This document shows, in pieces, positions 12,444 to 60,300 of a DNA stretch of 64,000 nucleotides. Numbering within the stretch: position 1 is the stretch's first letter; the number at the start of each line of letters is the position of its first letter. The notes under the pieces are model-generated. The model did no database searches and was not told where the DNA came from. It saw nothing but the letters and a program-made list of their open reading frames with translations. The stretch lies in the sequence record MT939492.1. One strand, written 5' to 3'. The translations under genes were made by a program, and so were the position numbers.

Positions 12444-12445
12444 TC

Positions 12446-13000: not shown

Positions 13001-13031
13001 TCCTTCCTTCCCAAAGAGTAACAAGATCAAC

Positions 13032-15689: not shown

Positions 15690-15735
15690 ACGGCTGGGAG
15701 GGTGACCTCCCAGCTATGCCGCATCTTTTTTTTTT
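15683..15735 (+). terminator. GGCATA...TATGCC-flanked hairpin with U-tract
   Basis: ggcataaacg-gctgggagg-gtga-cctcccagc-tatgccgcatctttttttttt. Confidence 0.75.
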
Positions 15736-15804
15736 GTCCCCGGAAATGCCGAAACTTATCCTATGTTGACCGGAAGGTCTAACGTCTCCTAACCACCAAA
15801 GGAA

Positions 15805-18280: not shown

Positions 18281-18321
18281 CGGCATAAATAGAGGAGGGG
18301 CCGAAGCCCCTCCTCTATGCC
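18281..18321. terminator. Bidirectional GGCATA...TATGCC hairpin
   Basis: cggcataaat-agaggaggggc-cgaa-gcccctcctct-atgcc between convergent genes; no U-tract. Confidence 0.7.
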
Positions 18322-18337
18322 CCCATGCTGTTCGCGA

Positions 18338-19492: not shown

Positions 19493-19601
19493 TTTCAATA
19501 CCTCTAGCTAGTAAGGTGGGTGCGCATTGGTAGGCAAGGTCCGGTGAAGTGGAGCTGCCCACATAAGATAGATTCGGTTCCAAAGAACCCGATTCCAAAA
19601 A

Positions 19602-36500: not shown

Positions 36501-36647
36501 CATCCCACCAGTCTGGACTTCCCGGTTGGCGTAGACCAACTTGGAAACCAGCGAACCGAGCTGCGGGCTGTTCTTCAGGGCCCCGATCTTCGGCATTGCC
36601 TTTCGGCGATCGCTGTCCTTCGAAAAGACGGGCGGCAGGTTGCTCAT
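33513..36647 (-). CDS. Portal protein (phiKZ gp129-like) with a C-terminal ParB/Srx-like domain
   Basis: DLRLNMQIMVSSILSPKD, PSEAVIPV.VP..P..HIGYF and KFGIGRSLLE are typical of the family; divergent from the baseplate gene as in phiKZ-like phages. Confidence 0.75.
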   Translation of the reverse strand: MSNLPPVFSKDSDRRKAMPKIGALKNSPQLGSLVSKLVYANREVQTGGMFRRREVNLPGDQFFTKLSDNTATNVTDSANLMQLLPDLRLNMQIMVSSILSPKDMINAKLNYRVQDGIFDSELSGLLLDVVSTHFSQVYKMDSRLPTLLEDILYHRGSRPMIILSESTIDDVINNPTRTSMESVKAAVEGVDGNCLGWLGQPKEAAGDAAKGTSTAAGVGFALESFSGSGQHANQSYNPVFRPFGDSNAAKAGRLVITDNPEMLKMPALAQAAIHHRSDAILKRRNNRKGLLNLPKVTVATESLGTDGKPTLMEVQSALYTQRRYASMPVQTLYTRDQLKSKTKGHPLVIEAPSEAVIPVFVPSDPSDHIGYFLVCDEQGHLVNKATQDDYYGQLNQNVNANNDMISQLIQSTHRGTYGMKGNNEIDGESLQRAYTDMVEQNVLARLRAGAAGANVTIARPEEVYRIMLARTLANQDTRLLYVPAEMVTYFAIDYNKFGIGRSLLEDTKILGGMRAILMFANTMGSLRNSVGRTKLNIKLDERDDDPVDTVEFIIGEFSKNRQQAYPLGASNPLDIISFLQNAGVEVVVSGNDGYPNTEVNAEDFAASVNKPDLDLDNLLRKNHSLSLGIPVEMVDNAQGPEFATTAVTNNLLLTKRVMKTQEQFCPHVTDFVQKYTYNSGTLLDRLRKIIVENKGKLGDEVRQYIQTHGQELNVDNVVKLFIDSIICELPSPDTTKVKVQIDAYKEYREALDEVLPAYISKEMFDGGGDQNTDISSAVEGLVALTKAHYLRQYLRTNNIMPELFELMELDEKGVSKVNIFDSTHDHMKTLYKVFGKYMDKIKKLVEAREPQDETPPDDGGAGPGADDGMGTGADEFGTDTENPDETQDTGEEEQTDTGEEEEEQEEEEQTETGEEEAAAETGAEEETGEEASTESIADLYQEADDRTYFYEAVSRPINPLLRAAHSIEPESVEVKDLRFNLQQAGSLSPRLVSRADYSYPLVGVREEDGRVVILDGMKRLARANADGAFRLPVKIVSMEQAKQN

Positions 36648-36691
36648 TATCCACTCCAGTACACAAACAATTTAGAAGGGAGGACGCAGCG

Positions 36692-39391
36692 GTGTCCACT
36701 GCGTATTACAAACTTTACGTCGCCGACGTTCTTGCATTGTCGCGCTCGCTGGTCATCAAGTCCGCCGATGCTGCCGAGGCGAGCAATCGGTATCTTCGTG
36801 AGCTCGGCTACGAAGTGCGTGACGAAGATCCCAGTAGCTGGCGTTATTACAGGAACATGGCCGGCGAGTATCATCCAGCGGACAAACTGATGTATGTCAC
36901 CTCGCTGGACACGCTTCAAAGAATAGAGTTCACCAAGGAAAGTTTGGCTGAGCATCGCGTCACCAAGCGCGAATACTCCACCCACGGGGACTACTACAAG
37001 CAGCTTCGGGAGAAATACCCGGCGCAGGTCGGACTGATCAACGGTATCCTCAACCCGATCGATCTGACCGCTGGGTTCACTCCCAACGACGTGGACGCTG
37101 CCGACTTCTCCACGATCTACAACTGCGCCGACGGCACGATCTTGTACTACGATCAGACGTTGGTGGAGAGCAACGAGCGCAACCTGATCCCGCAGCTGGA
37201 GGCATGGCTGCGCCGTGTCCTGATCCGCTGGATCGTTCCGGGGTTCCAGCTCACCGACGACATGTACTTCGGTGCGATGTTTGCAGCCATCGGCTCGAAC
37301 ATCCCCGGCAAGATCATGGGTATCCGTGACAGCAATGCGCACACTCGCTACGCGCACAGCTTCCACATCCGCGAGTTCCTGGCCAGCCATGGCAAGCTGG
37401 ACACGTTCATCGACACGCTGACCAAGAAGCAGATGCTGTGGCTGTATCGCAACATCCGCTACATCGAGCGCAATCCGGGTAAGCAGGAGACCTTCGATGA
37501 TCTGCTGCAGAACCTGCTGACCGAACGCGGCATCCCGCTGGCCAAGTGGGACATTCGCCACGACCTGGAAGAGCAGCCGGACAACATCTCCCCCACTCCG
37601 CGCTTGTTCCGTACTGCGTTGAACTTCGGGTTCAATCAGACCGGTGACGATGTGCGTAGCGTGGCGCGCATGTTGGATGCGGAGCAGCCTGCGGCAAAGG
37701 ATAACGCTTCCATCCAGGGTTACGAGGAGCCTCTGATCACCGAGGCCATCCAGACCGCTGCAATGGATGCGTTCCCGACGAAGGTACTTGAATCGGCCAT
37801 GCTGGATCTGACCGACTCGATGCCCTTCACGCTGTCGGACACCCTGCTCAACCACTGGATCTTCTGGAGCAACAACGATCGCTACACGCCGGTTATCACC
37901 GTGCCCGATCCTCGTTCGGGTGAAGGTGTACGGATGACGGTACGCAACGCGTTCATCGTCTACCTGTGGGCTTACAACAAGTCTCGCGGTGTCGACCTGG
38001 TACGCTTGCCGAAGCTGGAGGCTCGCCATATCCTCCGTGATCCTGCTCCGCGTCCGTCTGAGCTGTGGACCATCGTCGATCGCAAGTACGTCAAGGACAA
38101 CATCGTAGAGGCTCTCTACGCTGGTCACCCGGACATGATCCCCAGCAAGATCATCTCCACGGTCACCTTCTACGAAGCCTGTCAGGAGATCTTCAACTAC
38201 ACCATGCACCAGCGCGACGTTTACGCCGCCCAGGAGCATGAGATGACTCGTGGCATGACCGAGGCGCTTGCGCACCGGTTCTTCTATAACGTCCCGGTGG
38301 ACTTCGGCATGAGTCTGTACTACGAGGACTGGCTGACCGAGAACAACTACCTGATCCACGACTACAGCGTCTTGGAGCTGGATCTGTTCGCCTCGAACAT
38401 CCTGAAGGTTGCAACCGGGATGGACAGCACCAACACCAAGTCGGCTAAGGAGCTGCAGCAGGCGATGATCTCGCTGATGGAGCAGCTGTCCAGCTATTCC
38501 ATCCAGTTCATCTCCTCCATCAACTCCGATGCGTTGAAGATGGCTGACTTCGCTGTCATCCGTCTGGGCGATGACTACACCACCGCTGGCGATACCACGG
38601 ACCTGTCCAAGCTGGCCGTGCGTGTGCTCAGTGCTGACACGTTGGCTCGACATGAAGTTGAGTACGACATGATCGGTGATCTGGTGGAGTTCGATGTGAC
38701 GTCCACCAAGCTCCACGAGCTGGACGTAGACTTCTCGGTTGGCTTTGAAGGCGGTCTCTCTCGCGAGGTCACTGAGAACGTGGACATGCTCAATGTGCGA
38801 TTCTCCATCGTGCAGGAGCCGTCCAAGACGCTGGCCAGTCAGATCACCAAGACCACGCTGCCCGTGTTCGATGCTACTGCTCGCTTCACGGCGGGTAAGT
38901 ATCTGGCCACAGACAGCAACCCGCTGTTGGCAATGCCCAATGGCTGGTCGGTGATTCGACGCATGAACGATGACAACAACGCGGCAGTGTATCCCCATAA
39001 CGCTACGATCGCTCGTACCGGTATGGTGGGTGCAAATGCCAAGGTGCTGGTGACCGCTGTTCCTCCGCGCAATACGGCAGAGGTTGAGCGTTACACCGGC
39101 GTCATCGAACTGCAGGCGCCGCTGCTGGATCTGGCCACGTACTTCACTGGTGCTAACCTGCGCTGGGACGGAGACGTGCGTCCGATGGACGTCTACGAGA
39201 TCGTGGACTGGCTCAATCGCAAGTACGGCATGGAGCTGGCTCGCGATGAATTCGTCTACGCTGCAATCGCCGCCAATGCAACCTCGGTGACGATGAGTGC
39301 CTCGACCAAGAGCATGCGACTGAAGGGAAGCTTCACTGTCCAGATTCCGGCCAGTAGCTTCATGGGTAAGCTGGCAGAGATGTTCGGCTAA
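36692..39391 (+). CDS. Conserved virion (baseplate-associated) protein
   Basis: GTG with RBS ggagg; SWRYY.NMAGEYHP and SLDT..I.F motifs typical of the phiKZ-like gene next to the portal; C-terminal anchor-like module. Confidence 0.7.
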   Translation: MSTAYYKLYVADVLALSRSLVIKSADAAEASNRYLRELGYEVRDEDPSSWRYYRNMAGEYHPADKLMYVTSLDTLQRIEFTKESLAEHRVTKREYSTHGDYYKQLREKYPAQVGLINGILNPIDLTAGFTPNDVDAADFSTIYNCADGTILYYDQTLVESNERNLIPQLEAWLRRVLIRWIVPGFQLTDDMYFGAMFAAIGSNIPGKIMGIRDSNAHTRYAHSFHIREFLASHGKLDTFIDTLTKKQMLWLYRNIRYIERNPGKQETFDDLLQNLLTERGIPLAKWDIRHDLEEQPDNISPTPRLFRTALNFGFNQTGDDVRSVARMLDAEQPAAKDNASIQGYEEPLITEAIQTAAMDAFPTKVLESAMLDLTDSMPFTLSDTLLNHWIFWSNNDRYTPVITVPDPRSGEGVRMTVRNAFIVYLWAYNKSRGVDLVRLPKLEARHILRDPAPRPSELWTIVDRKYVKDNIVEALYAGHPDMIPSKIISTVTFYEACQEIFNYTMHQRDVYAAQEHEMTRGMTEALAHRFFYNVPVDFGMSLYYEDWLTENNYLIHDYSVLELDLFASNILKVATGMDSTNTKSAKELQQAMISLMEQLSSYSIQFISSINSDALKMADFAVIRLGDDYTTAGDTTDLSKLAVRVLSADTLARHEVEYDMIGDLVEFDVTSTKLHELDVDFSVGFEGGLSREVTENVDMLNVRFSIVQEPSKTLASQITKTTLPVFDATARFTAGKYLATDSNPLLAMPNGWSVIRRMNDDNNAAVYPHNATIARTGMVGANAKVLVTAVPPRNTAEVERYTGVIELQAPLLDLATYFTGANLRWDGDVRPMDVYEIVDWLNRKYGMELARDEFVYAAIAANATSVTMSASTKSMRLKGSFTVQIPASSFMGKLAEMFG

Positions 39392-39431
39392 CGGCATAAG
39401 GGGAGGGGCTTTCGCCCCTCCCTCTATGTCC
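39392..39431. terminator. Bidirectional GGCATA...TATG hairpin
   Basis: cggcataag-gggaggggc-tttc-gcccctccc-tctatgtcc; no U-tract on either strand. Confidence 0.7.
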
Positions 39432-39449
39432 TTCTGCTTTCAGCGCCGC

Positions 39450-40499
39450 TTAGGTCTGCGGAGCCGACAGCGTGAAGTGACCCAGCACGCGCGGACCGAA
39501 GCCGACCTTGCGGATGGCCACGGCAGTCGCCGAACGGATGGTGCCAGCGATGGCGACCAGGTCGACCAGCGCCTGCAGCTTCAGGCCCGACTCGCTCACG
39601 GTGAGGACGATGTCAGCCAGTTCCGGCACGGCGTCTTCGGCCACGTTCTCACGCAGCACGTAGCCTTCGCCTTCGGCCACGACCTTGTACTCGATCTCGC
39701 GGCTGCCATCGATGCGCAGGCGGAAGTCGTACAGGCTGTCCAGCTTGGCGCCGTCAGCCAGCGAGGCCGGGTTGGCCAGTTCGAACAGGACCATGTACTT
39801 GGCGTCCGGATCGACTTCGTGGCCACCGTTGGACCACTTGACCTTGCCGTCCATGTTGGCGCCCACGCCGACGATGGCTTCCTGGTTGGTGCCGACTTCG
39901 TAGAACACGTGGTCCACGATCGACGGATCCATGCCCGGCAGGGTCAGCGATTCGGTGTAGGCGTTGAGCACCTTGCCCACATGACCCGGCAGCGCTTCGG
40001 GGTACTGGAAGCCCTTCAGCGTGGTGTGGGTGATGTAGTTCGGCAGCATGATCTTTTCAGCGATCAGCTGAACGACCATTTCGCCCAGGTACACGTACGA
40101 ACCCGGCTTGGCCTTGACGGTCAGCTCGGCGGAGCCGAACTCGCCCGGGTAGGCGCCGACGATCTCGACGTCGGTCGGTTCCAGCTGCAGGCCGTACTCG
40201 GCGTTCATCGCGTCCAGCAGGGTGGCGTCGGAGACCACGTCCTTGGCCGAGAACTCCACTTCCTGGTCGATGAACATGCGGTCCAGGAACAGACGCTCGA
40301 AGCGCGTGGTGACCGGGCCGTACCAGTAGCTGGTCGGCGAAGCGGTGACCGTACAGGCGGTGTTGCGCTCGTCCTGGTTCTGGCTCAGTTCCACCGGCGG
40401 CCCGAAGATCAGGTCGTCGAAGGTGAAGGTGGCGTCGTTGTCGTCGTTGATCAGGTCCAGGAGGAGTTCCTTACCCGGCTTGTTCAAGTAGTCGATCAT
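39450..40499 (-). CDS. Tail-tip/fibre paralog 1
   Basis: KPGKELLLDLINDDN..FERLFL..LKGFQYP anchor module. Confidence 0.8.
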   Translation of the reverse strand: MIDYLNKPGKELLLDLINDDNDATFTFDDLIFGPPVELSQNQDERNTACTVTASPTSYWYGPVTTRFERLFLDRMFIDQEVEFSAKDVVSDATLLDAMNAEYGLQLEPTDVEIVGAYPGEFGSAELTVKAKPGSYVYLGEMVVQLIAEKIMLPNYITHTTLKGFQYPEALPGHVGKVLNAYTESLTLPGMDPSIVDHVFYEVGTNQEAIVGVGANMDGKVKWSNGGHEVDPDAKYMVLFELANPASLADGAKLDSLYDFRLRIDGSREIEYKVVAEGEGYVLRENVAEDAVPELADIVLTVSESGLKLQALVDLVAIAGTIRSATAVAIRKVGFGPRVLGHFTLSAPQT

Positions 40500-40569
40500 T
40501 TCGTAATACCCTTGTGGTGTGTTGCAGTGAGGTGGAGACGCTCAAATGATTCGCAAGATGCTTGGCGAA

Positions 40570-41685
40570 TCAGCGGCGCATGGTCCGGGTGAGGACGATT
40601 TCCTTGGAGCGCTTGGTCTTGTGCTTGCCGCGCAGAGTCACGATCAGAACGCCGGTCGTACCCGCACTACCGCCGCCGCCACTGCCACGGGACATGCCCA
40701 GGGTGATCAGACGCGGCTGGATATGCTGCTGGTAAGAGACTGCGTAATCCCACTCGAAGCTGAACGCTGCGTACGAACGGTACGCGGGGACATTGTCGCC
40801 GCTGACGTTCATACCGTCGGTGACGCCGTCGCCTTGCCAGATCACACGGCCGTTGCCCTGGAGAACCGGCTTCAGGGTAACCTTGCCGTTGATCGAACCC
40901 ATTTCCAGGGTGAAGTCGTATTCGTCCATCAGCTGGACGAGGTTACGGGCACTTGCCGCCTTGATGCCGACGATCATCTGCGGGAAGCGATAGCTACCGC
41001 TGCCGATCGGGCCACCGACCTGCACGATAGCACCCTTCGGATCGCCATTGATCGTGGTCGGGTAGGTGACCGGATAACCACGCATCTGGATATCCAGCAC
41101 CACGTCGCCGTTGTTGGCACCGTAGGTCTGCAAGCCATCGACGATCGGACCGTCGGTGTAGATGACGTTGTTCCACGAGGGGACGTCGGCGTTCGGGTAA
41201 TGGAAACCCTCCAGCTCGGTCTTCAGGATGCGGGCGGAGAGCGGCATGCGCTCCAGGTCCACGAACAGCGGGAACTCGCCGGTGTAGGCGAGATTGTTGC
41301 CCTTGGCGCGCAGCTTGTACGGTTCGGGGATTGCGCCATCGTCCTGCGGCAGCAGCTCGAACTCGTCGATCTTGAAGGACAGATCGTAGGTGAAGTTCAG
41401 GTGACAGATGATGTCTGCCGCCGTGGCTTCCTTGGGAACGGAAACCGAGACGTCCTGTCCGGCGAACAGCGTTGCCAGATCCAGTCGATCGTACTTGACG
41501 TCGACGAACTTGTTCCACGGCGAGTCCTCGGCCGCAGCAACATTCAGCTCGGTGTTGCCATCTTCCGTGGAGGCGGTCGGCTCACCGAAGACGAGCTGTT
41601 CTTCGGTGATGGTGGTGCCGTTCTCGGAGTTGATCAGATCCAGGATCAATTCGGAGCCGGATTTTGCGAGAGGACAGACGTCCAT
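40570..41685 (-). CDS. Tail-tip/fibre paralog 2
   Basis: MDVCPLAKSG..YDRLDL..RMPLSAR..GFHYPNAD. Confidence 0.82.
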   Translation of the reverse strand: MDVCPLAKSGSELILDLINSENGTTITEEQLVFGEPTASTEDGNTELNVAAAEDSPWNKFVDVKYDRLDLATLFAGQDVSVSVPKEATAADIICHLNFTYDLSFKIDEFELLPQDDGAIPEPYKLRAKGNNLAYTGEFPLFVDLERMPLSARILKTELEGFHYPNADVPSWNNVIYTDGPIVDGLQTYGANNGDVVLDIQMRGYPVTYPTTINGDPKGAIVQVGGPIGSGSYRFPQMIVGIKAASARNLVQLMDEYDFTLEMGSINGKVTLKPVLQGNGRVIWQGDGVTDGMNVSGDNVPAYRSYAAFSFEWDYAVSYQQHIQPRLITLGMSRGSGGGGSAGTTGVLIVTLRGKHKTKRSKEIVLTRTMRR

Positions 41686-41720
41686 CTATAGTACCTGCTG
41701 CGGTGGGTGAAACGGTTGGA

Positions 41721-42935
41721 TTACTTTTCAGGATCGGTTCGGACGTCCAGACGCACGACCAGAGACTTACCCTTGCCATCCTTGCGCTTGGCCGTGATGA
41801 TGACGTAGCCTTCGCCGTGCATGCGAGATGCGCCACTGCCGCTCCAACCACGGAAGCGCGGCAGCAACGACACGCCCGGCTGGAGGGAGGAGCGGAACCA
41901 GTTGCCAGTGGTCGAATTGTTCACGACGGACCAGGGCAGGGTGCTGTTGTCGTCCAGCAGCCACTGAATGGCCTGGGCGTTCGACGGATGGATTCGGGCC
42001 ACGGCAGTGACCTTCTTACCGATGGCGTACGCGTCATTCGTCTGGGTATTGCGACTGAACGCTTCGGCGCTGATGTCGTACAGCGACATCAGTTCCTGGG
42101 CAGTCCAGTTTGCAGCGTCCACACGACGGAACCCGCACGAGATGAAGAACGCGTTCTGCGTGACATCACCGCCGATTTTCATCTGCGGGAGAATCATCAC
42201 CCCGTCAACGACAGGCCAGTTGAACTTACTGTACCCGGCGCGCGAATTGGTGCGATGATTGGTGGAAACATCACCGCCAACGTAGAGCAACAGTTCGCCA
42301 TTGTTGGCCGACTTCATGCCCGTGCGCCATTCGTCACGAACATCCGCCGGGGGTTCGGAGTATGCGCCGAGCTGAGTTATTCCCGCCAGGCCAGTTTCGT
42401 TGGCGTGATAGATCACGTTATTGAGACTGGGCTCATCCGCATTGGGATAGCGGAAGCCGGCTAGATCGGTGGTCAGGATACGGGCGCTCAGGGGCATCCG
42501 CTCCAGATCGACGAACACATCGAACGTACCGGAGTACGCCAGATTGTTGGCCAGTGCTTCAACCTTGTAAAGCTCGGGGAGTTCGCCGTCTTCAACCGGC
42601 GTCACCGTGAACTCATTGACATCGAACTTGGTCCCGTAGGTATAGTTCAGATGACAGATGATGTCGGCAGGTGTTGCGGCTTTCGGAACGGAGACTTCCG
42701 CACGTTCACCATGGAACAAGGTGCTCAGGTCCAGGCGATCGTAGTTCACATCCACGAAGCTGTTCCAGGGCGCATCCGCTGCGGCAGCCAGGTTCAGCTT
42801 GGTGTTCTGTTCGGCATCGGTTGCTTCGGGGTTACCGAAGACAAGCTGGTCCTCAGTGATCGCCGAGGAGTTCTCGGCGTTCACCAATTCGAGGATCAGC
42901 TCCTTGCCAGATTTGGCCAAGGGGCAGACTTCCAT
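41721..42935 (-). CDS. Tail-tip/fibre paralog 3
   Basis: MEVCPLAKSG..YDRLDL..RMPLSAR..GFRYPNAD. Confidence 0.82.
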   Translation of the reverse strand: MEVCPLAKSGKELILELVNAENSSAITEDQLVFGNPEATDAEQNTKLNLAAAADAPWNSFVDVNYDRLDLSTLFHGERAEVSVPKAATPADIICHLNYTYGTKFDVNEFTVTPVEDGELPELYKVEALANNLAYSGTFDVFVDLERMPLSARILTTDLAGFRYPNADEPSLNNVIYHANETGLAGITQLGAYSEPPADVRDEWRTGMKSANNGELLLYVGGDVSTNHRTNSRAGYSKFNWPVVDGVMILPQMKIGGDVTQNAFFISCGFRRVDAANWTAQELMSLYDISAEAFSRNTQTNDAYAIGKKVTAVARIHPSNAQAIQWLLDDNSTLPWSVVNNSTTGNWFRSSLQPGVSLLPRFRGWSGSGASRMHGEGYVIITAKRKDGKGKSLVVRLDVRTDPEK

Positions 42936-42945
42936 CGGTTACTCC

Positions 42946-44142
42946 TTAGTTCGGGGCGGTGGGGAAGGGAGGATTGGCAACGGCCGGGAGCTTGATAACG
43001 TCAGCCTTGACCAGCAGATTCATCAGCTTGCCCTTACCGTCCTTGCGTACTGCGTAGAAGCGATACTCTGCCTCGCCGGAGAACACGAAGTTGGAGTACA
43101 GCAGACCCGGCCATACGTTTGCATTGGTGGGGACGAGCTGGGTAATCGTCGCGTTGGCAGGCAGGTTTTCACCAGCCACGCTACCGAAGTCCGTACCGGC
43201 AATGGGATCACCCACCACGCGGAACAGATGCGTGGTCCCGGCAGCGGAAGCCTTCTGCCACTTCCAGGTACGAGTCACCCACTCCGCATCGGCAGTCGCG
43301 CGCGACTTGGTCTCGAAGAAGATATCGTAGTCTTCCATGAGCTGACGCGGAGTTTTACCCTCGTAGCGCAGACCGACCCACACTTCCCAGCCAGTGGAAC
43401 TGGTGACATTGGAGGGACTGGTATAACGCCAGCCATAGAGCGACCTGCGTCCAGTTACCGGATCCGCCGGGTGACCCGGGTAGCTACCAGTGCTGTCAGC
43501 AGGCTTTCGAGACAGGCCCCGGAATCCCAGGAACAGCTCGCCATTGGTCGCCTCGTCGTAACCCCAGGTATTGCCATTCTGGCGTGGCGCCCAGGTCGAA
43601 CGCACGTTCGGGCGAACCACCGGGTTGTTCAGAGACGGCTCATCCGCATTGGGATAGCGGAAGCCATTGAGGTCGGTCTTCAGCAGACGCGCCGACAACG
43701 GCATGCGATCGAGGTCAACGAAGATGTCCATCTCGCCGGTGTAGGCGAGGTTGCCTTCCTTGGCCTTGAGCTTGAACAGCTCCGGCAGTTCGCCATCCTC
43801 GACAGCCGTGAGATCGAACTCACTGGCAGTGAACTTCAAATCGTACGTGAAGTTCAGATGGCAAACGATATCTTCCTTGGTCGCACCCTTCGGCGCGGAA
43901 AGTTCAGCGCGTTGTCCGTGGAACAGAGTGTTGAGGTCCAGTCGGTCGTAGACAATGTCCACGTCCTTGTTCCACGGGGAGTCCGGTGCCGCCACCAGAT
44001 TGAGGCCGGTGTTACCGTCCTCGTTCCCAGCCTGCGGCGTACCGAACATGAGCTGCTCGACGGTGATCTCGCTGTTGTTTTCAGCATTGACCAGATCGAG
44101 GACCAGCTCCTGGCCAGTTTTGGCCAATGGGCAAACATCCAT
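42946..44142 (-). CDS. Tail-tip/fibre paralog 4
   Basis: MDVCPLAKTG..YDRLDL..RMPLSAR..GFRYPNAD. Confidence 0.82.
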   Translation of the reverse strand: MDVCPLAKTGQELVLDLVNAENNSEITVEQLMFGTPQAGNEDGNTGLNLVAAPDSPWNKDVDIVYDRLDLNTLFHGQRAELSAPKGATKEDIVCHLNFTYDLKFTASEFDLTAVEDGELPELFKLKAKEGNLAYTGEMDIFVDLDRMPLSARLLKTDLNGFRYPNADEPSLNNPVVRPNVRSTWAPRQNGNTWGYDEATNGELFLGFRGLSRKPADSTGSYPGHPADPVTGRRSLYGWRYTSPSNVTSSTGWEVWVGLRYEGKTPRQLMEDYDIFFETKSRATADAEWVTRTWKWQKASAAGTTHLFRVVGDPIAGTDFGSVAGENLPANATITQLVPTNANVWPGLLYSNFVFSGEAEYRFYAVRKDGKGKLMNLLVKADVIKLPAVANPPFPTAPN

Positions 44143-44154
44143 CTATTATCTCCT

Positions 44155-45345
44155 TTAACCGGTTCGGCCGGCGAGGTTGACCTTGAAAGTCAGTTCGATC
44201 GGCTTGGCAATGCCTGAGGTGCGCTGGGCGACAACATTGTAGGTTACATAACCCACGCAGATCGCGACCCGCTGGTTGGTCGGAGAGTTCGAGGTTACTA
44301 CATCAGCCTGCTGCAAAGCGGCGAATTGATTACCCGGGGAATAGGGGATGTAGGAGTCGACCTGGTACGCCGGGACGCCGTTCTGCATGACGACGGAGAG
44401 ACGATCTTTCAGACCGTCCTCATAGACGATTTCCAGATACGACTGACCAGCTACCCGGACTACCTTACCCTTACGGGAGACAGCCTTGGTCTGATCGTTG
44501 GGACTGACGATCATCTCAACATCGATGATGTAACCATCGAGCAGATGTTCGAACTTGTCCTGCCCCGGCAACATGCCCATGAACAGAAGCAGTCTCGGCG
44601 CATTGCGGTAGATCGTGTTGTTGTACTGGTTGGCCGTACTGTAGGCACCATACACGGCAGGTTCCCCGCCGAAGTAATCGGCCGGCTGGAAGACAGCCGT
44701 ACTACCCTGCGTCCTGTACCACACCGCTCGGGCACCCACAAACATCTCGCCATTGCGAGCGTAGGAGTAGCGGGTGAGACCACTGGCGCCTTCACCGAGG
44801 ATGAACCCATCAGGCATCGTCTTGTTGTGTTCGACGATGATATCGCCGCCGGCGGAGTAGCCGAAGCCATTGAGGTCAGTGACCGTGAGGCGGGCCGACA
44901 ACGGCATGCGGTCCAGATCAGCGAAGACCTGGAGCGTACCCGTGTAAGCCAGGTTCTCCGCCTTGGCTTTCATCTCGTACAGTTCAGGCAGGTCACCGTC
45001 TTCCAACGGCTTGATCTCGAACTCATCCACCTTGAAGGCAGTGCCGTAGGTGTAGTTGAGGTGACACACCAGGTCGGACGGGGTAGCGCCCTTGGGCAGA
45101 GAGATCTCGGCTCGTTCGTTGTGGAAGATGGTCGCCATGTCCAGTCGATCGTAAGACACGTCGACGAACTTGTTCCATGGAGCATCTTCAGCGGCTGCAA
45201 CGTTGAGGGCGGTGTTGCCGCCCTCGCTGTTGGCCGCAGGCGTACCGAGCACCAGCTGCTCGGCCGCGATCTCCGTATTGTTCTCGGAGTTGATCAGGTT
45301 GAGGATAAGCTCCTCACCTGACTTTGCCAGCGGGCAGATTTCCAT
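44155..45345 (-). CDS. Tail-tip/fibre paralog 5
   Basis: MEICPLAKSG..YDRLDM..RMPLSAR..GFGYS. Confidence 0.82.
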   Translation of the reverse strand: MEICPLAKSGEELILNLINSENNTEIAAEQLVLGTPAANSEGGNTALNVAAAEDAPWNKFVDVSYDRLDMATIFHNERAEISLPKGATPSDLVCHLNYTYGTAFKVDEFEIKPLEDGDLPELYEMKAKAENLAYTGTLQVFADLDRMPLSARLTVTDLNGFGYSAGGDIIVEHNKTMPDGFILGEGASGLTRYSYARNGEMFVGARAVWYRTQGSTAVFQPADYFGGEPAVYGAYSTANQYNNTIYRNAPRLLLFMGMLPGQDKFEHLLDGYIIDVEMIVSPNDQTKAVSRKGKVVRVAGQSYLEIVYEDGLKDRLSVVMQNGVPAYQVDSYIPYSPGNQFAALQQADVVTSNSPTNQRVAICVGYVTYNVVAQRTSGIAKPIELTFKVNLAGRTG

Positions 45346-45358
45346 CTAGGGATTCCTG

Positions 45359-47278
45359 TTAAGCGGTGAAGGTGAACATGGTCGCCATTTCGATCGGCTT
45401 GCCAGTACCATCCTTGCGCTTGAGTTTCCAACGCAGTTCGGTCTGGCCGACGTAGGCGTACCTGGCAGTGCTCAACTGCGTGACATTGAGACCCTTACAG
45501 AACGGCGGAGCATCGGCGAGCGCCGCCGCACTGCTGCCCTGAATCCCGTTGGGCCGGATGTTGACGACGTAGTAGTTCTTGCCGTCGATTTCCGTACGGC
45601 CGGCGTTGTAGTTGCTCGACCCACCCTGCAGTTTCAGACCGTATTGGAGCTTACCATTGGCGTCGGTCCAGGGCAGCATGTCACGCGTCTCGGTCGTCCA
45701 TGATGCCGACGAACTTGTACGACTACGGCAGATCAGCTGGATGTCATATTCCTTCATGACACGGTCATCGCCCAACTCATCGATGTCGTAGTTCAAACCG
45801 AACGCAAGGCGCCAGGGCTCCATGGTGGTGCCGATCATGATCGTCTTCGGCGAGCGGGTGGGGTTGTCCTGGGCAACGCCGCTCACAGTGCGCGTTTGAA
45901 TGGATCGGGTATAGAGCAGAACCTCACCATTGTCGACGTAGTCTACCAAGCCACCAGTGTCGCCTCGGGTTCCAACCACGCCCAGTCCGTTCGGCAGAGG
46001 AGCCGGCTGGGATACTACGTACGACGGAGTGGTCAGCGAACCAGGCTGATTCAACTGTGGGTCGGATGCGAACTTCATGCGCAGCACGATCGGATCCGCT
46101 ACCCCTTCCCTGCGCTGGAATACAACCTCGACTTCACCTTCACCGAACACACGCTGGATGCCTCGTCCGTCGATCACCTGGCTCCATTCCGTCAGCCCAG
46201 GCAGGGCGCGGTTTATGGTGCCCATGGAAATGTTCGCACGCATCCCCACACTTCCCAGCGTACCCTGATTACCGATAGAGCCGGCCTTGGCGCTGGCATC
46301 GTCTGGCTGGAAGTAGAAGCTATCGATACGTCCGAGGTCATCTTCGGCCTTGTAGTTACGCTCGGCCCGAACGCCGTTGCCATTACTCGACAAGGCCTTC
46401 AGGGTGATATCATAACGTTCAAGGATATCTTTAGTGGTGAGCGGCGTGCCGTCAACGTTCATGATGCCGACCAGCAGTGTCGGGGCAGCATTTGGCTGCG
46501 CCGCCGCCGCGCGTACCTGCGGGAACACCACCGTGCCGTTGATGGCATCGCGGGGACCATAGAACCTGCCTACTCCGCTCTGATTCGCCGGGAGCGACGG
46601 GTCGTAGGTGGGGACTTCCAGTGCCATGTAGCCGATGACCTCACCGTTATTGCCAGTGGTGACGCCACGACGATAGACAGCCTTCAAGGCAGGATCTGAA
46701 GGTGCGCTGTAGTAACCGAAGTTACCGTACATGCTGAAGTCGGTATCCGGGGTGTACACCACGTTGTCGAGCGCCGGACCTCGGTACGGGTACTTGAACC
46801 CGTTCAGATCGGTCACGGTCAAACGAGCCGTCAGTGGCATGCGATCAAGATCGGCAAACACATCCACCGATCCAACGTAGGCCATGTTGCCAGCCTTCGC
46901 CGTAACCTTGTAGAGTTCCGGCAAGTCACCATCTTCCAACGGGACGACGTCGAATTCAGCAACGTCGAACTTCAGGTCGTAGGTGTAATTCAGGTGGCAG
47001 ATCAGATCAGCCGCCGTTGCCCCCTTGGGCAGAGACACCTCGGCACGTTCGTTGTTGAACAACACTCCAAGATCGAGACGATCGAAGGAGGTATCCACGA
47101 AGCTGTTCCACGGTGCGTCGGGAGCTGCAGTCAGGCGGAGGGCGGTGTTCCCGCCCTCCTCATTCGATTCCACTTCGCCGAAGACCAACTGCTCCTCGGC
47201 GATCTCGCTCCCATTCTCCTGGTTGACCAGGTCGAGGATGAGCAGCTTACTGGGTTTCGCCAATGGGCAAACGTCCAT
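45359..47278 (-). CDS. Tail-tip/fibre paralog 6 (two variable domains)
   Basis: MDVCPLAKPS..FDRLDL..RMPLTAR..GFKYP; two NGE..YDI..R(K)xG units. Confidence 0.82.
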   Translation of the reverse strand: MDVCPLAKPSKLLILDLVNQENGSEIAEEQLVFGEVESNEEGGNTALRLTAAPDAPWNSFVDTSFDRLDLGVLFNNERAEVSLPKGATAADLICHLNYTYDLKFDVAEFDVVPLEDGDLPELYKVTAKAGNMAYVGSVDVFADLDRMPLTARLTVTDLNGFKYPYRGPALDNVVYTPDTDFSMYGNFGYYSAPSDPALKAVYRRGVTTGNNGEVIGYMALEVPTYDPSLPANQSGVGRFYGPRDAINGTVVFPQVRAAAAQPNAAPTLLVGIMNVDGTPLTTKDILERYDITLKALSSNGNGVRAERNYKAEDDLGRIDSFYFQPDDASAKAGSIGNQGTLGSVGMRANISMGTINRALPGLTEWSQVIDGRGIQRVFGEGEVEVVFQRREGVADPIVLRMKFASDPQLNQPGSLTTPSYVVSQPAPLPNGLGVVGTRGDTGGLVDYVDNGEVLLYTRSIQTRTVSGVAQDNPTRSPKTIMIGTTMEPWRLAFGLNYDIDELGDDRVMKEYDIQLICRSRTSSSASWTTETRDMLPWTDANGKLQYGLKLQGGSSNYNAGRTEIDGKNYYVVNIRPNGIQGSSAAALADAPPFCKGLNVTQLSTARYAYVGQTELRWKLKRKDGTGKPIEMATMFTFTA

Positions 47279-47288
47279 GGGTTACTCC

Positions 47289-48491
47289 TTATACGGCCTG
47301 AGCCTCGGTGGTGATGACGATCGGCTTGGCCTTGCCCAGCTTGCGGGTCAGGGTCAGCGTCACCTTGATGAGCCCGCGATAGGTGGTGATGCTGGTTCCG
47401 TTCACGCTGCCAGTGGTGGCAGCCAGGCCCGGGAACATCACGCTGCTACCGTTGAGGGTGAGCGTCTTGGTGGTGGTCTTACCCGAACCGGTGTTGGCAA
47501 GCGTACCGATGCGCGCACCGCCGGCAGCGTTATTGATGACCAGACGGTTGGGCTGATCCGGGAAGTATGCAATCAGACCCTTGACAACCTTCTGGTTGGA
47601 GCCGTTCGGGTTGGCGGTGGTGACCCCAACCTCGATATCGTAACCTTCCAGGATATCCTGGAACTTGGTCTGCTCTGCCGTCAGGTTGAAGCCGAGCGCC
47701 ATCTGCCAGGGCCGCACGTACCCGAAGTTGCTGTGCGAGCCGGTACGGGTGGTGATCTCGTACTTGCCATCCGGACGCGGGTCGACGCCGACGCCGCCAG
47801 TGGTGTCCCAGTTACCGGTGGTGTTGAACAGACGCACGAAGCTGACAACCTCGCCGTTCTCGGCGGTGTTGAAGCCCTTGCGGTTGTCCTGAATGCCGGA
47901 GCTGATGAGACCACCACCCCACGCGGTATCGACGGTGCGATTGCGCGTTGCGATGATGTTGTTCAGCGACGGGGTGTTGGCGTTGGGGTAGTTGAAACCC
48001 TCCAGGTCCGACTTGGTCAGACGGTCGCTCAGCGGGGAGCGTACCAGGTCCAGCAGCAGGGGAACCTGACCGAGGTAACCCAGCGAGGTAGCCACGGCCT
48101 TCAGGCTGAACTCACCCGGGATGTTCTCGGCGGTGATCGCTGGGGAGATCTCCATCTCCAGGTGCGCCAGCTTCGTACCGTACTCGGCGTTGATGCGGGC
48201 GATGATGTCTTCCTTGGTAGCGCCCTTGGGAACGGACACTTCGATACCACCGTTGAAGTAACGCGCCAGTTCGCGCCGGTGGTAGTCCACCTTCACGCTC
48301 TTGTTCCACGGTGCGTCCGGGACAGCGATGACCTCGGTGCGCGTGTTGGCGTCGCTGCCTTCGATCGGCTCAGCCAGCGTGTTGGGCAGACCGAAGTCGA
48401 TCTGCTCGCGCTCGATGGTGCTTTCGTTGTCCGTGTTGATCAGATTCAGCAACAGAACGTCACTGGTCTGAGGCTGTTCGATTTCGCTCAT
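47289..48491 (-). CDS. Tail-tip/fibre paralog 7
   Basis: ATG48491 with RBS ggag; LLLNLINTDN..YHRREL..RSPLSDR..GFNYPNAN. Confidence 0.8.
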   Translation of the reverse strand: MSEIEQPQTSDVLLLNLINTDNESTIEREQIDFGLPNTLAEPIEGSDANTRTEVIAVPDAPWNKSVKVDYHRRELARYFNGGIEVSVPKGATKEDIIARINAEYGTKLAHLEMEISPAITAENIPGEFSLKAVATSLGYLGQVPLLLDLVRSPLSDRLTKSDLEGFNYPNANTPSLNNIIATRNRTVDTAWGGGLISSGIQDNRKGFNTAENGEVVSFVRLFNTTGNWDTTGGVGVDPRPDGKYEITTRTGSHSNFGYVRPWQMALGFNLTAEQTKFQDILEGYDIEVGVTTANPNGSNQKVVKGLIAYFPDQPNRLVINNAAGGARIGTLANTGSGKTTTKTLTLNGSSVMFPGLAATTGSVNGTSITTYRGLIKVTLTLTRKLGKAKPIVITTEAQAV

Positions 48492-48539
48492 TTGAACGTC
48501 TCCATTGAAAGGTTGGCGGATGTCTAGTATCCCTCCTAG

Positions 48540-48642: not shown

Positions 48643-49725
48643 ATGCACAGCCAGCCTCCCTTCCCGCGCGGTGGACATCCGTCCCCCGGGAACTTCTCGG
48701 ATCAAGACAGTTGGAGTCCGGCCCCGCCGATTCATGGACGTCGGCCGCCTGCACCTGGTCCCCACGATCACCACGACCACGGTCATTCGCACCCGCGTCC
48801 TGATCCCCGGCATTACGAGCATTTCCCGCACCAGCATCGCCAGCCTGAAGCATGGCAGTGCGCTGAGCCGATCTACCCGTACAACAAGCCGGGTAAGCAC
48901 GTACTGGTCGATCTGATCAACCGTGCCAACGAGACCGACTTCGCGCCCGATCAGCTGGAGATCAGCGCGCCTGCTGCATTGGGCAATACGCTGACGCAGG
49001 TGCACATCACCCCGACCCACAAGACCGGGTGGTGCAGCAGCGAGACCTTCACTTATCATCGCATGATAATGGAGGCGTATCTGGGCAAGACCCACATCCA
49101 CTTGCATGTGGACGCCCGGATGACCAAGGAGAGTGTCGCCCAAGCCATGCGTGATCGCTACCGCATCTGGCTGGACATGGAAGACTTCGACGTGGACTTC
49201 TCCAACTGCCCGCCGAGCTGGCTGCAGCGTGGGCATTTCCTGGCTCGCCTTCGCTTCCGTCCGAACTGCCTGATCTGGATCGGCGCGATGGAAGTGATCC
49301 TGATCCCGGACAATCGCCTCAGTGCGATGATCTGCGTGACTGATCTCTCCGGCTTCATCTATCCAGACCATCTGGGTGGTCAGGGTCGCAAGCAGCTGGC
49401 CGAATCGTACTACCAGGATCTGGAAGGCACCATCATTTACCAGAACCTGCTGAAGTACCGTGTCGGCGAACCGGTGCGTACTCACGACGGCAAATGGCGT
49501 GACGGTACTCGCCTGACTGGCGACTTCTGGATCTCCTCTCCGCAGGAAGTCGAGTTCAACGTATCCGGTGCTCGCATCGTCTACAACGGTCGCAACGAAG
49601 GCCCGTGGCACTGCGGCTGCAACGACTACAGTCATGTGCTGGTGATCGAGCTGAGCCACCTGTGCAAGAACCTGCGCGGCAAGCTGGTCATCCCCTACGA
49701 CGTGCGGCGCGAACAGCCCTACTGA
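48643..49725 (+). CDS. Virion structural protein with an anchor module and a His/Pro-rich N-terminus
   Basis: KPGKHVLVDLINRAN..YHR..LSGFIYP; N-terminus PHDHHDHGHSHP. Confidence 0.75.
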   Translation: MHSQPPFPRGGHPSPGNFSDQDSWSPAPPIHGRRPPAPGPHDHHDHGHSHPRPDPRHYEHFPHQHRQPEAWQCAEPIYPYNKPGKHVLVDLINRANETDFAPDQLEISAPAALGNTLTQVHITPTHKTGWCSSETFTYHRMIMEAYLGKTHIHLHVDARMTKESVAQAMRDRYRIWLDMEDFDVDFSNCPPSWLQRGHFLARLRFRPNCLIWIGAMEVILIPDNRLSAMICVTDLSGFIYPDHLGGQGRKQLAESYYQDLEGTIIYQNLLKYRVGEPVRTHDGKWRDGTRLTGDFWISSPQEVEFNVSGARIVYNGRNEGPWHCGCNDYSHVLVIELSHLCKNLRGKLVIPYDVRREQPY

Positions 49726-49801: not shown

Positions 49802-50662
49802 GTGAAAATCATTACCCGTACTGGCTACGGCTGCCTGCGTCAGACCGAGCTGCTGATCGGCAAGCCCTACAAGGCACTGCCCAACAGCACGCTCAACGAG
49901 AAGTTCGAAGTCCAGGCCAACGTCCTGCCCGAAGCTGGCAAGATCCCGTACCTGGGCTTCTACTGCATCGGCCAGGGTGGTCACCGCAACGAGACCGGTG
50001 CCGACGGCTTCCCGCTGACCAGCCCGATCGACCATCGTCCCACCGACGGCGGCCTGTTCCGCTACCTGCCGTTCGTGCTGCGTGAGCTGACCAACGACCT
50101 GGACAGCGCCGCTCGTTCGCGCTATGCCATGCGCAAGATCATCCAGGTGGATGGCCGCAACTATGTGGCCTACTACCTGAAGAAGATCCCGATGGACTCG
50201 GTGTCCCCGGACATCTACTACAACCGCGTGGTGGATGGTCAGGTCACCACGACGCCGTTCCGTCCGGACAACAGCAACCTCAATCCGACCCCGCCGGAAA
50301 TCCCGAACACCGGTACTGTCACCACCTCCGGTGACTACCTGTCCGTTTCGGCGATCCTGCCGCTGGACTTCACCGCCAATGACGTGGCCGAGCTGGTCAA
50401 CGCCATCCGCATCCTGTTCAAGGACGAGCGCTACGCGGTGATCTCCGAGATCGGCATGGTGACTGCTGCCATCAAGCTGGTCACCGGCCCGGGCCCGGGC
50501 AACACCACGATCCAGTACGAAGAAGCTGTGGCTGCACAGATCGCCGCCCACATGACCGGTCACTACCCGGTCGGTTTCACCAACATGGGCTTCAACCTGA
50601 AGGTGAACCTGGGCGCGACCGAGCCGATGTTCAAGCCGTCGGCCGTTACCACCGGCAACTGA
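49802..50662 (+). CDS. Conserved virion (baseplate wedge-like) protein
   Basis: GTG start; NSTLNEKF, IG.GGH, YLPFVLR, VAYYLKK and ISEIGMV are typical of this phiKZ-like structural family. Confidence 0.6.
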   Translation: MKIITRTGYGCLRQTELLIGKPYKALPNSTLNEKFEVQANVLPEAGKIPYLGFYCIGQGGHRNETGADGFPLTSPIDHRPTDGGLFRYLPFVLRELTNDLDSAARSRYAMRKIIQVDGRNYVAYYLKKIPMDSVSPDIYYNRVVDGQVTTTPFRPDNSNLNPTPPEIPNTGTVTTSGDYLSVSAILPLDFTANDVAELVNAIRILFKDERYAVISEIGMVTAAIKLVTGPGPGNTTIQYEEAVAAQIAAHMTGHYPVGFTNMGFNLKVNLGATEPMFKPSAVTTGN

Positions 50663-50678: not shown

Positions 50679-51299
50679 ATGCTGGTGATGCCGGATCGAG
50701 GGAGAGAATACCGGGTGCTCGGAGTCGACCCCGGTGGTTTCTGTCTGGGTACAGCAGTCTTGGAGATCAACTTTGAGACCTCTTCCGTTGAGGTCATCCA
50801 TGCTGATACTGTCCATGCCAGCAATGCCGATGTCCGATACCCCGTGTTGCAGGAAGTGCACGGGGGTCGGGTTCCTCGACATCGAATGCTGGAGGACGAG
50901 ATTGCTTGCCTCCTGCGCACATTCGAACCCAACTCGGTGATTTCCGAATCGCCATTTATGCGCAAGTTTGCCAAGGTCTTCCATGCGCTGATCGAATGTG
51001 TTTACCTTCTCCGTTTCGCACTGCGGCAGTTCGATGAAAACATCAAGCTGTTGGCAGTGGATCCTCCATCGGTGAAGATGGCTGTGGGCGGAACTGGTAA
51101 GAGCGATAAGGACGCAATGAAGCGTCTGGTTTGCAAAGTACCTAATCTTACCTTTGCCGAAAGCGTCGATTACGATTCTCTGGACGAACACTCCGTGGAC
51201 GCAATCGCCATCGCCTACTGTCATTGCGCATACCTGCTTGGTTGCGCTAGAGAGGTTAAACCCAATGAAAATGCGCGACGCCGTAAAGGTCGTCGGTGA
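50679..51299 (+). CDS. ruvC: RuvC-like Holliday junction resolvase
   Basis: VLGVDPG, ISESPF, VKMAVGGTGKSDK and DEHSVDAIAIAY (all four acidic catalytic motifs). Confidence 0.9.
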   Translation: MLVMPDRGREYRVLGVDPGGFCLGTAVLEINFETSSVEVIHADTVHASNADVRYPVLQEVHGGRVPRHRMLEDEIACLLRTFEPNSVISESPFMRKFAKVFHALIECVYLLRFALRQFDENIKLLAVDPPSVKMAVGGTGKSDKDAMKRLVCKVPNLTFAESVDYDSLDEHSVDAIAIAYCHCAYLLGCAREVKPNENARRRKGRR

Positions 51300-51741
51300 A
51301 CTGACCCTGGCGGACTTCCCCTGGGGCCAGCGCATTGTCGACTACACCAACGATTTCCTGGAGGAGGCCGAGGTTTCCTTGGCCACCACGGGCGTTGAGC
51401 TGTTGGCTGAGATCAGCAAGCTGCCTGTGGAAAAGCAGGAAACGCTGCTGGCTCTGTCGTTGAAGATTCGCAAGCCGGAAGCCAAGCCGGTCAAGAAGGC
51501 GAAGAAGAAACACGCCGGACTGATCGAGTCGCTGGTGAAGAATCCGCGCTTGCTGATGTTGATGCTGGTCCTCACCGCATCTGTCGTCATCGCTTTCCTG
51601 GTCATCTTGGCCGTCAACGCCGCTGCCGTGAAGAATGGTGGCGCCCCTGATCAAGGACTGATCGACGCGGTGTTTAAGTTCCTGATTGAACTTGTCAAGG
51701 CATTCACGGGCGCCGGAGCAAATCCCACCCCCGCGATGTAG
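51265..51741 (+). CDS. Membrane protein (one TM helix plus an amphipathic helix)
   Basis: ATG51265 with RBS gagg; LLMLMLVLTASVVIAFLVILAV. Confidence 0.7.
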   Translation: MKMRDAVKVVGELTLADFPWGQRIVDYTNDFLEEAEVSLATTGVELLAEISKLPVEKQETLLALSLKIRKPEAKPVKKAKKKHAGLIESLVKNPRLLMLMLVLTASVVIAFLVILAVNAAAVKNGGAPDQGLIDAVFKFLIELVKAFTGAGANPTPAM

Positions 51742-56527: not shown

Positions 56528-56542
56528 CTTTCACCCTTTCTG

Positions 56543-59479: not shown

Positions 59480-59557
59480 GCGAGTACCTTGTAGCTGAAA
59501 TAAAGGAAATAAGGGCTCCCTGCCCGATGCATAGCATCAGGCAGAGAGTAGACCTTA

Positions 59558-60283: not shown

Positions 60284-60300
60284 TGTCGTATCCCTTTCAG

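Follow-up and report, generated by a model that had tools for sequence, protein, structure and literature searches.

A tandem array of DUF7941 virion-family genes in Xanthomonas phage Xoo-sp14, with C-terminal modules exchanged at the linker among relatives

The DNA analysed here, a stretch of 64,000 nucleotides referred to below as the window, is identical to bases 62001-126000 of record MT939492.1, which belongs to Xanthomonas phage Xoo-sp14, a 232-kb jumbo phage whose host is Xanthomonas oryzae pv. oryzae. The major capsid protein of Xoo-sp14 is related to those of phiKZ-like phages and the window contains syntenic homologues of DUF7208, wedge (phrog_3222) and phrog_3004 proteins, which places the phage among the chimalliviruses (phiKZ-like phages). 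The subject of this study is a gene array at positions 39450-48491 of the window, where a previous reading made from the letters alone (hereafter the sequence-only reading) had described seven tandem tail-gene paralogs. Seven intact, co-oriented and closely packed minus-strand open reading frames (ORFs), Xoosp14_129 to Xoosp14_135, were indeed found there, with spacers of 10-70 nucleotides. The encoded proteins (paralogs 1 to 7) are 349, 371, 404, 398, 396, 639 and 400 amino acids long, and each consists of an N-terminal module (the anchor), a linker and a C-terminal part, as follows (positions in the window).

39450-40499, minus strand: Xoosp14_129, paralog 1; N-module and linker 40002-40499, C-domain 39450-40001
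40570-41685, minus strand: Xoosp14_130, paralog 2; N-module 41197-41685, C-domain 40570-41196
41721-42935, minus strand: Xoosp14_131, paralog 3; N-module 42447-42935, C-domain 41721-42446
42946-44142, minus strand: Xoosp14_132, paralog 4; N-module 43654-44142, C-domain 42946-43653
44155-45345, minus strand: Xoosp14_133, paralog 5; N-module 44857-45345, C-domain 44155-44856
45359-47278, minus strand: Xoosp14_134, paralog 6; N-module 46790-47278, first C-domain 46064-46789, second C-domain 45359-46063
47289-48491, minus strand: Xoosp14_135, paralog 7; N-module 47988-48491, C-domain 47289-47987

The N-terminal ~165 amino acids of all seven proteins, and of an eighth paralog encoded elsewhere in the window, matched positions ~3-176 of the 276 in the model of Pfam family DUF7941 (PF25613), with E-values from 1e-23 to 1e-34 (1.5e-34 for paralog 1). 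The seven array proteins scored 83-120 bits against a cut-off of 27, showing that they are members of the family. The array proteins and paralog 8 also matched PHROG 1037 and PHROG 2935, both of which are labelled 'virion structural protein'. A local profile search revealed 11 DUF7941 ORFs in the window, so that the eight copies counted previously were an incomplete set. The four copies outside the array, of which the last three are additional to the earlier count, are listed below.

18338-19492, minus strand: Xoosp14_114, paralog 8, 384 amino acids; N-module 18980-19492, C-domain 18338-18979; DUF7941 E-value 5e-34
17156-17722, plus strand: Xoosp14_112, 188 amino acids; DUF7941 N-module only, Pfam E-value 2.7e-20 over positions 1-146 of 276
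48643-49725, plus strand: Xoosp14_137; canonical full-length DUF7941 protein, domain at ~48877-49701, Pfam positions 3-275 of 276, E-value 2e-54
36596-39391, plus strand: homologue of the phiKZ gp128 wedge protein, phrog_3222 E-value 2e-207; DUF7941-like domain at its C-terminal end, ~38966-39346

The protein identity between anchors was 58-67% among paralogs 2-6, 38-44% between these and paralog 7, and ~24-33% between paralogs 1 and 8 and all others; the anchor DNA of the copies was 61-71% identical. Thus, the shared anchor of about 160 amino acids described by the sequence-only reading corresponds to a common DUF7941 module present in all copies, but with identities ranging from ~24 to 67% it is not 'constant'. 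The AlphaFold models of paralog 6 and paralog 7 had predicted local distance difference test (pLDDT) values of 67 and 84, respectively. A Foldseek search with the two models matched chain 0 of PDB entry 9xqd with a probability of 1.0 in both cases, at a template modelling (TM) score of 0.60 and a root-mean-square deviation (rmsd) of 4.7 Å for paralog 6 and at TM 0.64 and 4.2 Å for paralog 7. This chain was confirmed to be PHIKZ127 (phiKZ gp127), indicating that the N-module of the array, as represented by these two models, has the fold of gp127 residues 1-150. In addition, the BFVD model of Xoosp14_112 matched the paralog 6 N-module with a TM score of 0.62. The canonical C-terminal domain of DUF7941 (positions ~176-276) is not present in the array, as the Pfam matches stop at positions 174-198 of 276. 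Its absence does not disqualify the array proteins from membership, because gp23, gp86, gp92 and gp161 of phage Goslar also lack the canonical C-terminal domain.

The hinge motif that had been reported at the end of the anchor was found in every copy of paralogs 1-8. The same linker motif is present in Xoosp14_137 and in the canonical DUF7941 members of Salmonella phage SPN3US and lines up with the beginning of the linker in gp127, indicating that the hinge is the linker of the DUF7941 family rather than an array-specific element. In the AlphaFold models the linker had pLDDT values below 50 (residues 153-162 of paralog 6 and 158-164 of paralog 7), in keeping with a flexible linker. Taken together, these results demonstrate that the seven array genes encode virion-family DUF7941 proteins with a gp127-like fold and the family linker motif.

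The C-domains of paralogs 2-7 belong to one divergent all-beta family with a module size of ~180-250 amino acids. The sequence-only reading had held that the C-domains look unrelated; however, BLASTP aligned the C-domains of paralogs 3 and 6 with 27% identity over 248 amino acids (E-value 1e-20), and hhalign joined the C-types of paralogs 2-7 with probabilities of 82-99%, with paralog 7 as the hub, showing that they are homologous. When the nine C-domains of the window were aligned, a few columns were invariant, and these correspond to the three ordered motifs listed previously; the motifs hold for paralogs 2-7, but their look-alikes in paralog 1 are unproven, as no sequence link connects its C-domain with the others. 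Paralog 6 contains two tandem C-domains (profile E-values 5e-66 and 4e-63), whose order of strands and helices is identical in the AlphaFold model, and the C-domain in the model of paralog 7 is all-beta. In Foldseek the two-domain model of paralog 6 gave a possible kinship with arrestin/Vps26, which was rejected as a generic tandem-sandwich likeness (TM ~0.25, rmsd above 18 Å). The possibility that the C-domain is a diverged form of the canonical DUF7941 C-terminal domain was also rejected, the hhalign probability against canonical C-domains being 0.07%. Family scans of the C-domain gave no Pfam or PHROG match, and PDB sequence searches with paralog 4 alone and with an eight-sequence profile returned nothing relevant.

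Paralog 8 had been said to follow the pattern of the array. This is true of its N-module, but its C-domain was not matched by a C-domain profile made from the array alone. It was matched directly by P0027, a protein from outside the chimalliviruses (31% identity, E-value 7e-16), which in turn scored 32.5 bits with the array-only profile (shuffled controls ≤3.8 bits). The C-domain of paralog 8 therefore joins the array family only through intermediates, because P0027 matches both.

The distribution of variation within the C-domain was also determined. The share of the commonest residue was 0.33 in columns of predicted strands versus 0.36 in coil, and the gap share was 0.12 in coil versus 0.06 in strands, indicating that insertions and deletions prefer loops. 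The 'antibody-like' layout of a fixed frame with variable loops proposed by the sequence-only reading did not hold up against these data: conservation is not biased towards strands, whole domains diverge or are replaced, and only insertions and deletions favour loops.

The same locus was examined in relatives recovered from metagenome assemblies, namely L003, L004, L007 and L008 together with the more distant L011, which have arrays of six or seven genes. Among isolated phages, megablast of the array against a collection of genomes gave no match, and tblastn of paralog 1 against phage genomes gave matches to the N-module only, in Erwinia and Cronobacter jumbo phages, with no close relative. 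The N-modules of the four closer metagenomic relatives were 82-99% identical to those of Xoo-sp14. In the end slots, occupied by paralogs 7 and 1, the C-type was retained in all relatives, and paralog 1 was the most conserved slot, with C-domains 71-97% identical among relatives. In the inner slots, nine gene pairs had N-modules that were 85-98% identical but C-domains that were only 12-31% identical. In each of the nine pairs, a likelihood change-point was located at a site from 2 residues ahead of the hinge to 10 residues past it. The pairs represent about six independent junctions; by a rough estimate, the chance of six random junctions falling within 13 of ~400 residues is of the order of 1e-9.

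The junctions could be placed precisely. Paralog 2 and its L007 counterpart shared an N-type at 90% and a C-type at 26% identity, with the junction 10 amino acids past the hinge, and the junction lay at the same distance between paralog 4 and L003_4, where identity was 98% for the N-modules and, for the C-domains, 31% when aligned globally and 28% over the best stretch in BLASTP. In paralog 5 compared with L003, L008 and L007 (N-module 94-98%, C-domain 26-27% identical), the junction was exactly at the hinge, and the DNA ceases to be homologous to that of L003 and L008 at position 44856, the paralog 5 hinge, with homology returning near the start of the next gene. For the replacements of paralog 3 in L008 and paralog 2 in L007, the DNA homology likewise stops at the hinge and returns at the next gene. 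N-types and C-types were also found in new combinations. The paralog 6 N-type of L004 (89% identical) bears a single C-domain resembling that of paralog 5; C-type 3 stands behind N-type 3 in the window and in L007 and behind N-type 4 in L003; and the paralog 3 N-type bears other C-types in L008 and L004. In total, two different N-types were seen in front of each of the C-types 3, 4, 5 and X9.

Synonymous divergence (dS) was 0.9-2.2 for the swapped cassettes, versus 0.2-0.5 for their N-modules and 0.16-0.5 for flanking genes. Because dS of the swapped cassettes is near saturation, these cassettes are old or foreign alleles that recombination has introduced, and not products of local hypermutation. 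As judged from these genome comparisons, relatives have exchanged whole C-domain cassettes at the linker and N- and C-types have been re-assorted, which bears out the earlier suggestion of domain swapping by recombination at the hinge.

The accompanying suggestion that related anchor DNA enables the swaps needs qualification. The longest exact run between array genes was 29 nucleotides, shared by paralogs 3 and 4 and starting at codon 160 (the hinge), and the L003 chimera of N-type 4 and C-type 3 is joined at the site of this run. All other pairs of array genes had longest shared runs of 10-20 nucleotides. The anchor DNA within the genome is too diverged to promote frequent exchange between paralogues, and the orthologous anchors of co-infecting relatives (82-99% identical) are likelier homology arms. 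The window contained no near-identical repeat of 50 nucleotides or more, the array repeats being the 61-71% identical anchors only, and zero inverted repeat pairs (seed 14, minimum length 50). Repeats of the kind that would point to retro-diversification or inversion were thus missing from the window, in which the sequence-only reading had seen no reverse transcriptase or invertase.

To see how widely the C-module occurs, a profile built from all nine C-domains in the window was used, and it matched only 51 cluster representatives among 1.84 billion. DUF7941 was carried by 27 of the 44 C-module representatives that were scanned. In others, which lack DUF7941, one to three C-modules follow an N-terminal part of another kind, 110-140 amino acids long. 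Five such proteins were still matched, at 27-49 bits, by a C-domain profile restricted to the array types (shuffles ≤3.8 bits). The P0027 gene lies directly upstream of a tail sheath gene, and the sheath of its contig is closest to those of PaBG-type jumbo phages. Similar modules were found in gp9 of Sphingomonas phage PAU, in Brevundimonas jumbo phages, in Xanthomonas phages RTH11 and LucasX, and in g094c and g095c of Yersinia phage fHe-Yen9-04, which were annotated by the depositors as possible cell-interaction surface proteins. Judging from these matches, the C-module circulates among unrelated jumbo phages. Sites of the module include the following.

L012, 10001-11758; JQ362498.1, 2174-2869; LT960551.1, 47806-49790: one to three tandem copies of the C-module, outside the Chimalliviridae
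MT939492.1, 80365-80958 (window 18365-18958): C-module site in paralog 8

The neighbourhood of the array was compared with the baseplate genes of phiKZ. In the phiKZ virion, one gp127 is located in each of the outer peripheral baseplate's star lobes, and a band of gp139 dimers runs from the wedge protein gp128 to gp127 (PMC13250141); a gp126-gp127 dimer fits the baseplate density (10.64898/2026.04.21.720040; PMC13250141). In phage KTN4, which belongs to the phiKZ species, DUF7941 was detected in the equivalents of gp126 and gp127 (E-values 9e-10 and 7e-28), the gene at the gp139 position encodes DUF7208 (1e-117), and the gene at the gp128 position belongs to phrog_3222, as does the wedge-like ORF at 36596-39391. 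The homologue of phiKZ gp139 in Xoo-sp14 is the following gene, whose synteny is kept in all relatives.

49802-50662, plus strand: Xoosp14_138, DUF7208 protein, Pfam E-value 2e-102

Xoosp14_137 adjoins this gene and is transcribed divergently from the array; it is the probable counterpart of phiKZ gp127. At the other end, the wedge-like gene converges on the array, and DUF7941 was matched at residues 791-917 of its product (E-value 2.6e-8), an extra C-terminal domain that is absent from phiKZ gp128 (724 amino acids). The 'tail-tip' location given by the sequence-only reading should consequently be revised, as the anchor is a DUF7941 module whose phiKZ homologue gp127 resides in the outer peripheral baseplate (PMC13250141).

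Some further features of the locus were recorded. In GenBank, the wedge locus is annotated as an 815-amino acid gene that begins at 36944, together with a small overlapping gene on the minus strand (36647-36955), whereas the relatives have a single gene of 899 amino acids. The first ~78 codons of Xoosp14_137 (48643-48876) are rich in proline, histidine and arginine and lie outside the DUF7941 match, so either the start is annotated too far upstream or this is a low-complexity extension; the relatives are also called at 360 amino acids. A gene for a RuvC-like Holliday-junction resolvase (50959-51300, plus strand) lies two genes from the recombination-prone array and keeps this position in all relatives. 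A weak RuvC match occurs near the matching place in KTN4, and the proximity to the array may reflect ancestral synteny rather than a functional link. At 53612-63507 (minus strand), four tandem genes, Xoosp14_144-147, form a second paralogue family, of the gp131-type fibre family (PHROG 2163, 13857 and 3573), and the largest of them contains seven copies of a 183-nucleotide (61-amino acid) repeat at ~61658-62880. Plus-strand ORFs at 39426-40592, 40546-41691, 42799-44217 and 47025-48527 mirror the array and are arginine-rich and of low complexity, as antisense frames are in DNA of 59% G+C. The long plus-strand ORFs over array genes were rejected as genes and regarded as high-GC antisense shadows; the one that was scanned (18317-19507, plus strand) had no family match. 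Scans of the locus for sigma-70 promoters and terminators gave counts no better than shuffles, and BLASTP at E-values below 1e-3 showed no paralogy for the neighbouring genes at 10765-16926.

The function of the array can be considered in the light of phage Goslar, in whose virions the chimallivirus-specific DUF7941 proteins are very abundant (10.64898/2026.04.21.720040). Goslar gp22 forms filaments in vitro, and the Goslar DUF7941 proteins are predicted to assemble head-to-tail, each linker binding to the N-domain that follows; a 'fiber cloud' that is attached to the peripheral baseplate and has a role in host recognition has been proposed (10.64898/2026.04.21.720040). In gp86, gp92 and gp161 of Goslar, the N-module is followed by carbohydrate-binding, hydrolase or leucine-rich repeat domains (10.64898/2026.04.21.720040). 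We consider it probable that the array encodes DUF7941 virion proteins with linker-exchanged C-modules that form baseplate-anchored filaments displaying host-binding modules. By analogy with the Goslar and phiKZ structures, the N-module and linker would dock head-to-tail onto other DUF7941 modules, and attachment to the outer peripheral baseplate may occur via Xoosp14_137, which is gp127-like, and via the gp139-like band of DUF7208 protein, so that the seven proteins would join baseplate-anchored filaments with their C-modules displayed outward. In these proteins an all-beta module, present twice in paralog 6, has taken the place of the canonical DUF7941 C-terminal domain. The C-modules likely take part in host recognition by binding structures of the host surface, as their turnover and the occurrence of this module in tail-region proteins from other, unrelated jumbo phages suggest. 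The multi-receptor repertoire envisaged by the sequence-only reading is a plausible idea. Cassette exchange between co-infecting relatives could re-sort the binding specificities. The exchanged cassettes have their upstream junction at the linker, and their downstream junction is where the gene ends or the next one starts; the N-modules conserved between orthologues, together with the adjacent gene, would serve as homology arms.

A further-reaching version of this model, offered tentatively, is that a single heteropolymeric filament net is built from the seven proteins as interchangeable subunits. They might co-polymerise head-to-tail via DUF7941 and the linker, each displaying a different adhesin module, and thereby provide multivalent, combinatorial capture of the host, while cassette exchange re-sorts their specificities from a module pool shared by Chimalliviridae and PaBG-like, PAU, Brevundimonas and Yersinia jumbo phages.

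Several observations weigh against the model of filaments that display host-binding modules. Filament formation and baseplate docking are extrapolated from Goslar and phiKZ, where much of the work is AlphaFold-based and in preprint form, and the virion location of the seven proteins is an annotation by homology. The best Foldseek matches of the C-domain were lectin domains of fimbrial adhesins, pilins and immunoglobulin-like sandwiches, with TM scores of at most 0.34 and E-values of ~1e-2, and ligand binding by the C-domain is conjectural because it has no convincing structural neighbour. The ratio of non-synonymous to synonymous divergence (dN/dS) was higher for retained C-domains (0.12-0.66) than for N-modules (0.02-0.45, ≤0.16 in most pairs), so that the retained C-domains, with values below 1, give no gene-wide signal of positive selection. 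The comparison covers few relatives (four or five), two of which, L003 and L008, are closely related to one another. Finally, the C-domain of paralog 1 could not be linked to the other C-domains by sequence (hhalign 1% or less, profile score -1.4 bits). Its BFVD model aligned with the paralog 6 model over 424 columns (E-value 1e-16), well above matches involving the N-module only, which is suggestive only.

An alternative explanation treats the seven proteins as decorations or structural spacers of the filaments or the peripheral baseplate that bind no ligand, with C-terminal turnover resulting from weak constraint or from escape from host defences that sense phage structural proteins. The lack of a recognised binding fold or catalytic motif in the C-domain and its dN/dS below 1 would fit this explanation, as would the fact that gp22 and gp23, the most abundant DUF7941 proteins of Goslar, have no recognisable binding domain. 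However, weak constraint does not explain why near-saturated dS is confined to the C-domain or why C-types stand behind different N-types, findings which imply that intact foreign modules were acquired and retained. Moreover, tail-region proteins of unrelated jumbo phages also end in this module, sometimes in two or three copies, which is the usual signature of host interaction, and we regard the spacer explanation as unlikely. Far less probable still is that the array corresponds in Xoo-sp14 to the phiKZ fibre paralogues gp131-gp135, which have a fibre-anchoring N-domain and form hetero-hexameric baseplate fibres. The layout is analogous, with tandem tail-region paralogues that share an N-domain and differ in their C-domains (PMC13250141), but the gp131-gp135 equivalents of KTN4 match PHROG 13857 and 2163 without DUF7941, the Xoo-sp14 members of the gp131 family sit elsewhere (53612-63507, minus strand), and the PDB chain matched by the models is gp127 and not a gp131-type N-domain. 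Membership of the array in the gp131-like fibre family was accordingly rejected, as its proteins match PHROG 1037 and 2935 only and neither PHROG 2163 nor 13857.

The remaining explanation, antibody-like targeted diversification, would involve hypermutation of loops in place, by a diversity-generating retroelement or something similar, or site-specific inversion. A few framework motifs are kept in very divergent domains and insertions and deletions prefer predicted loops, as such a mechanism might produce. Nevertheless, the window lacks a near-identical template/variable repeat pair as well as inverted repeats, divergence is spread over strands and coil alike, synonymous sites of swapped cassettes are near saturation, the junctions coincide with the domain boundary, and all seven ORFs are intact and co-oriented, so this mechanism is barely credible here.

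That phage host-recognition proteins combine a conserved anchor with exchangeable distal domains is already well established, and DUF7941 was recognised only in 2026 as an abundant virion component of chimalliviruses and linked to a proposed host-capturing filament cloud. New here are a whole tandem array that has traded the canonical C-terminal domain for a previously undescribed beta-sandwich module, comparative evidence for the linker as a recombination joint, which fits its proposed conserved role in protein-protein docking, and the sharing of the module among unrelated jumbo phages. These findings provide a sequence-level handle on variation of the outermost virion surface in jumbo phages of a crop pathogen, which bears on natural host specificity and on biocontrol phages.

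In mosaic phage tail-fibre and tailspike genes, a conserved N-terminal adaptor is combined with exchangeable receptor-binding domains, similarity drops at the domain boundary, and the domains are exchanged horizontally. The array differs from these genes in that its anchor is probably a polymerising DUF7941 module and not a trimeric fibre shaft, and no trimerisation or chaperone features were seen in the array. The phiKZ proteins gp131-gp135 resemble the array in having a shared N-terminal attachment domain, differing distal C-domains and tandem genes, but they belong to the family of PHROG 2163 and 13857, and the C-domain of gp131 is a seven-bladed propeller (PDB 4gbf). More closely related are phiKZ gp126 and gp127, which like the array proteins belong to the DUF7941 family, have the same N-domain fold (TM 0.60-0.64) and are encoded by genes adjoining the gp128 wedge gene. 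Unlike the array, however, the phiKZ type comprises about three members, consisting of the N-module alone or with the canonical C-terminal domain, without an array or a beta-sandwich module.

The DUF7941 proteins of Goslar, like those of the array, consist of an N-module followed by the linker, occur as many paralogues, and have the canonical C-terminal domain replaced in some members. In Xoo-sp14, unlike in Goslar, seven members lie in one tight tandem array; the all-beta module that they carry, of one type in paralogs 2-7, is matched by neither Pfam nor PHROG; and exchange of linker cassettes is documented between the relatives of Xoo-sp14. SPN3US (NC_027402.1, 115393-122930) likewise has a tandem chimallivirus DUF7941 array, of eight genes. 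The canonical full-length form (positions 1-276) is found in seven of the eight SPN3US array members but in none of the seven of Xoo-sp14, and the eighth SPN3US member has the N-module followed by a different C-terminal part, as in Xoo-sp14.

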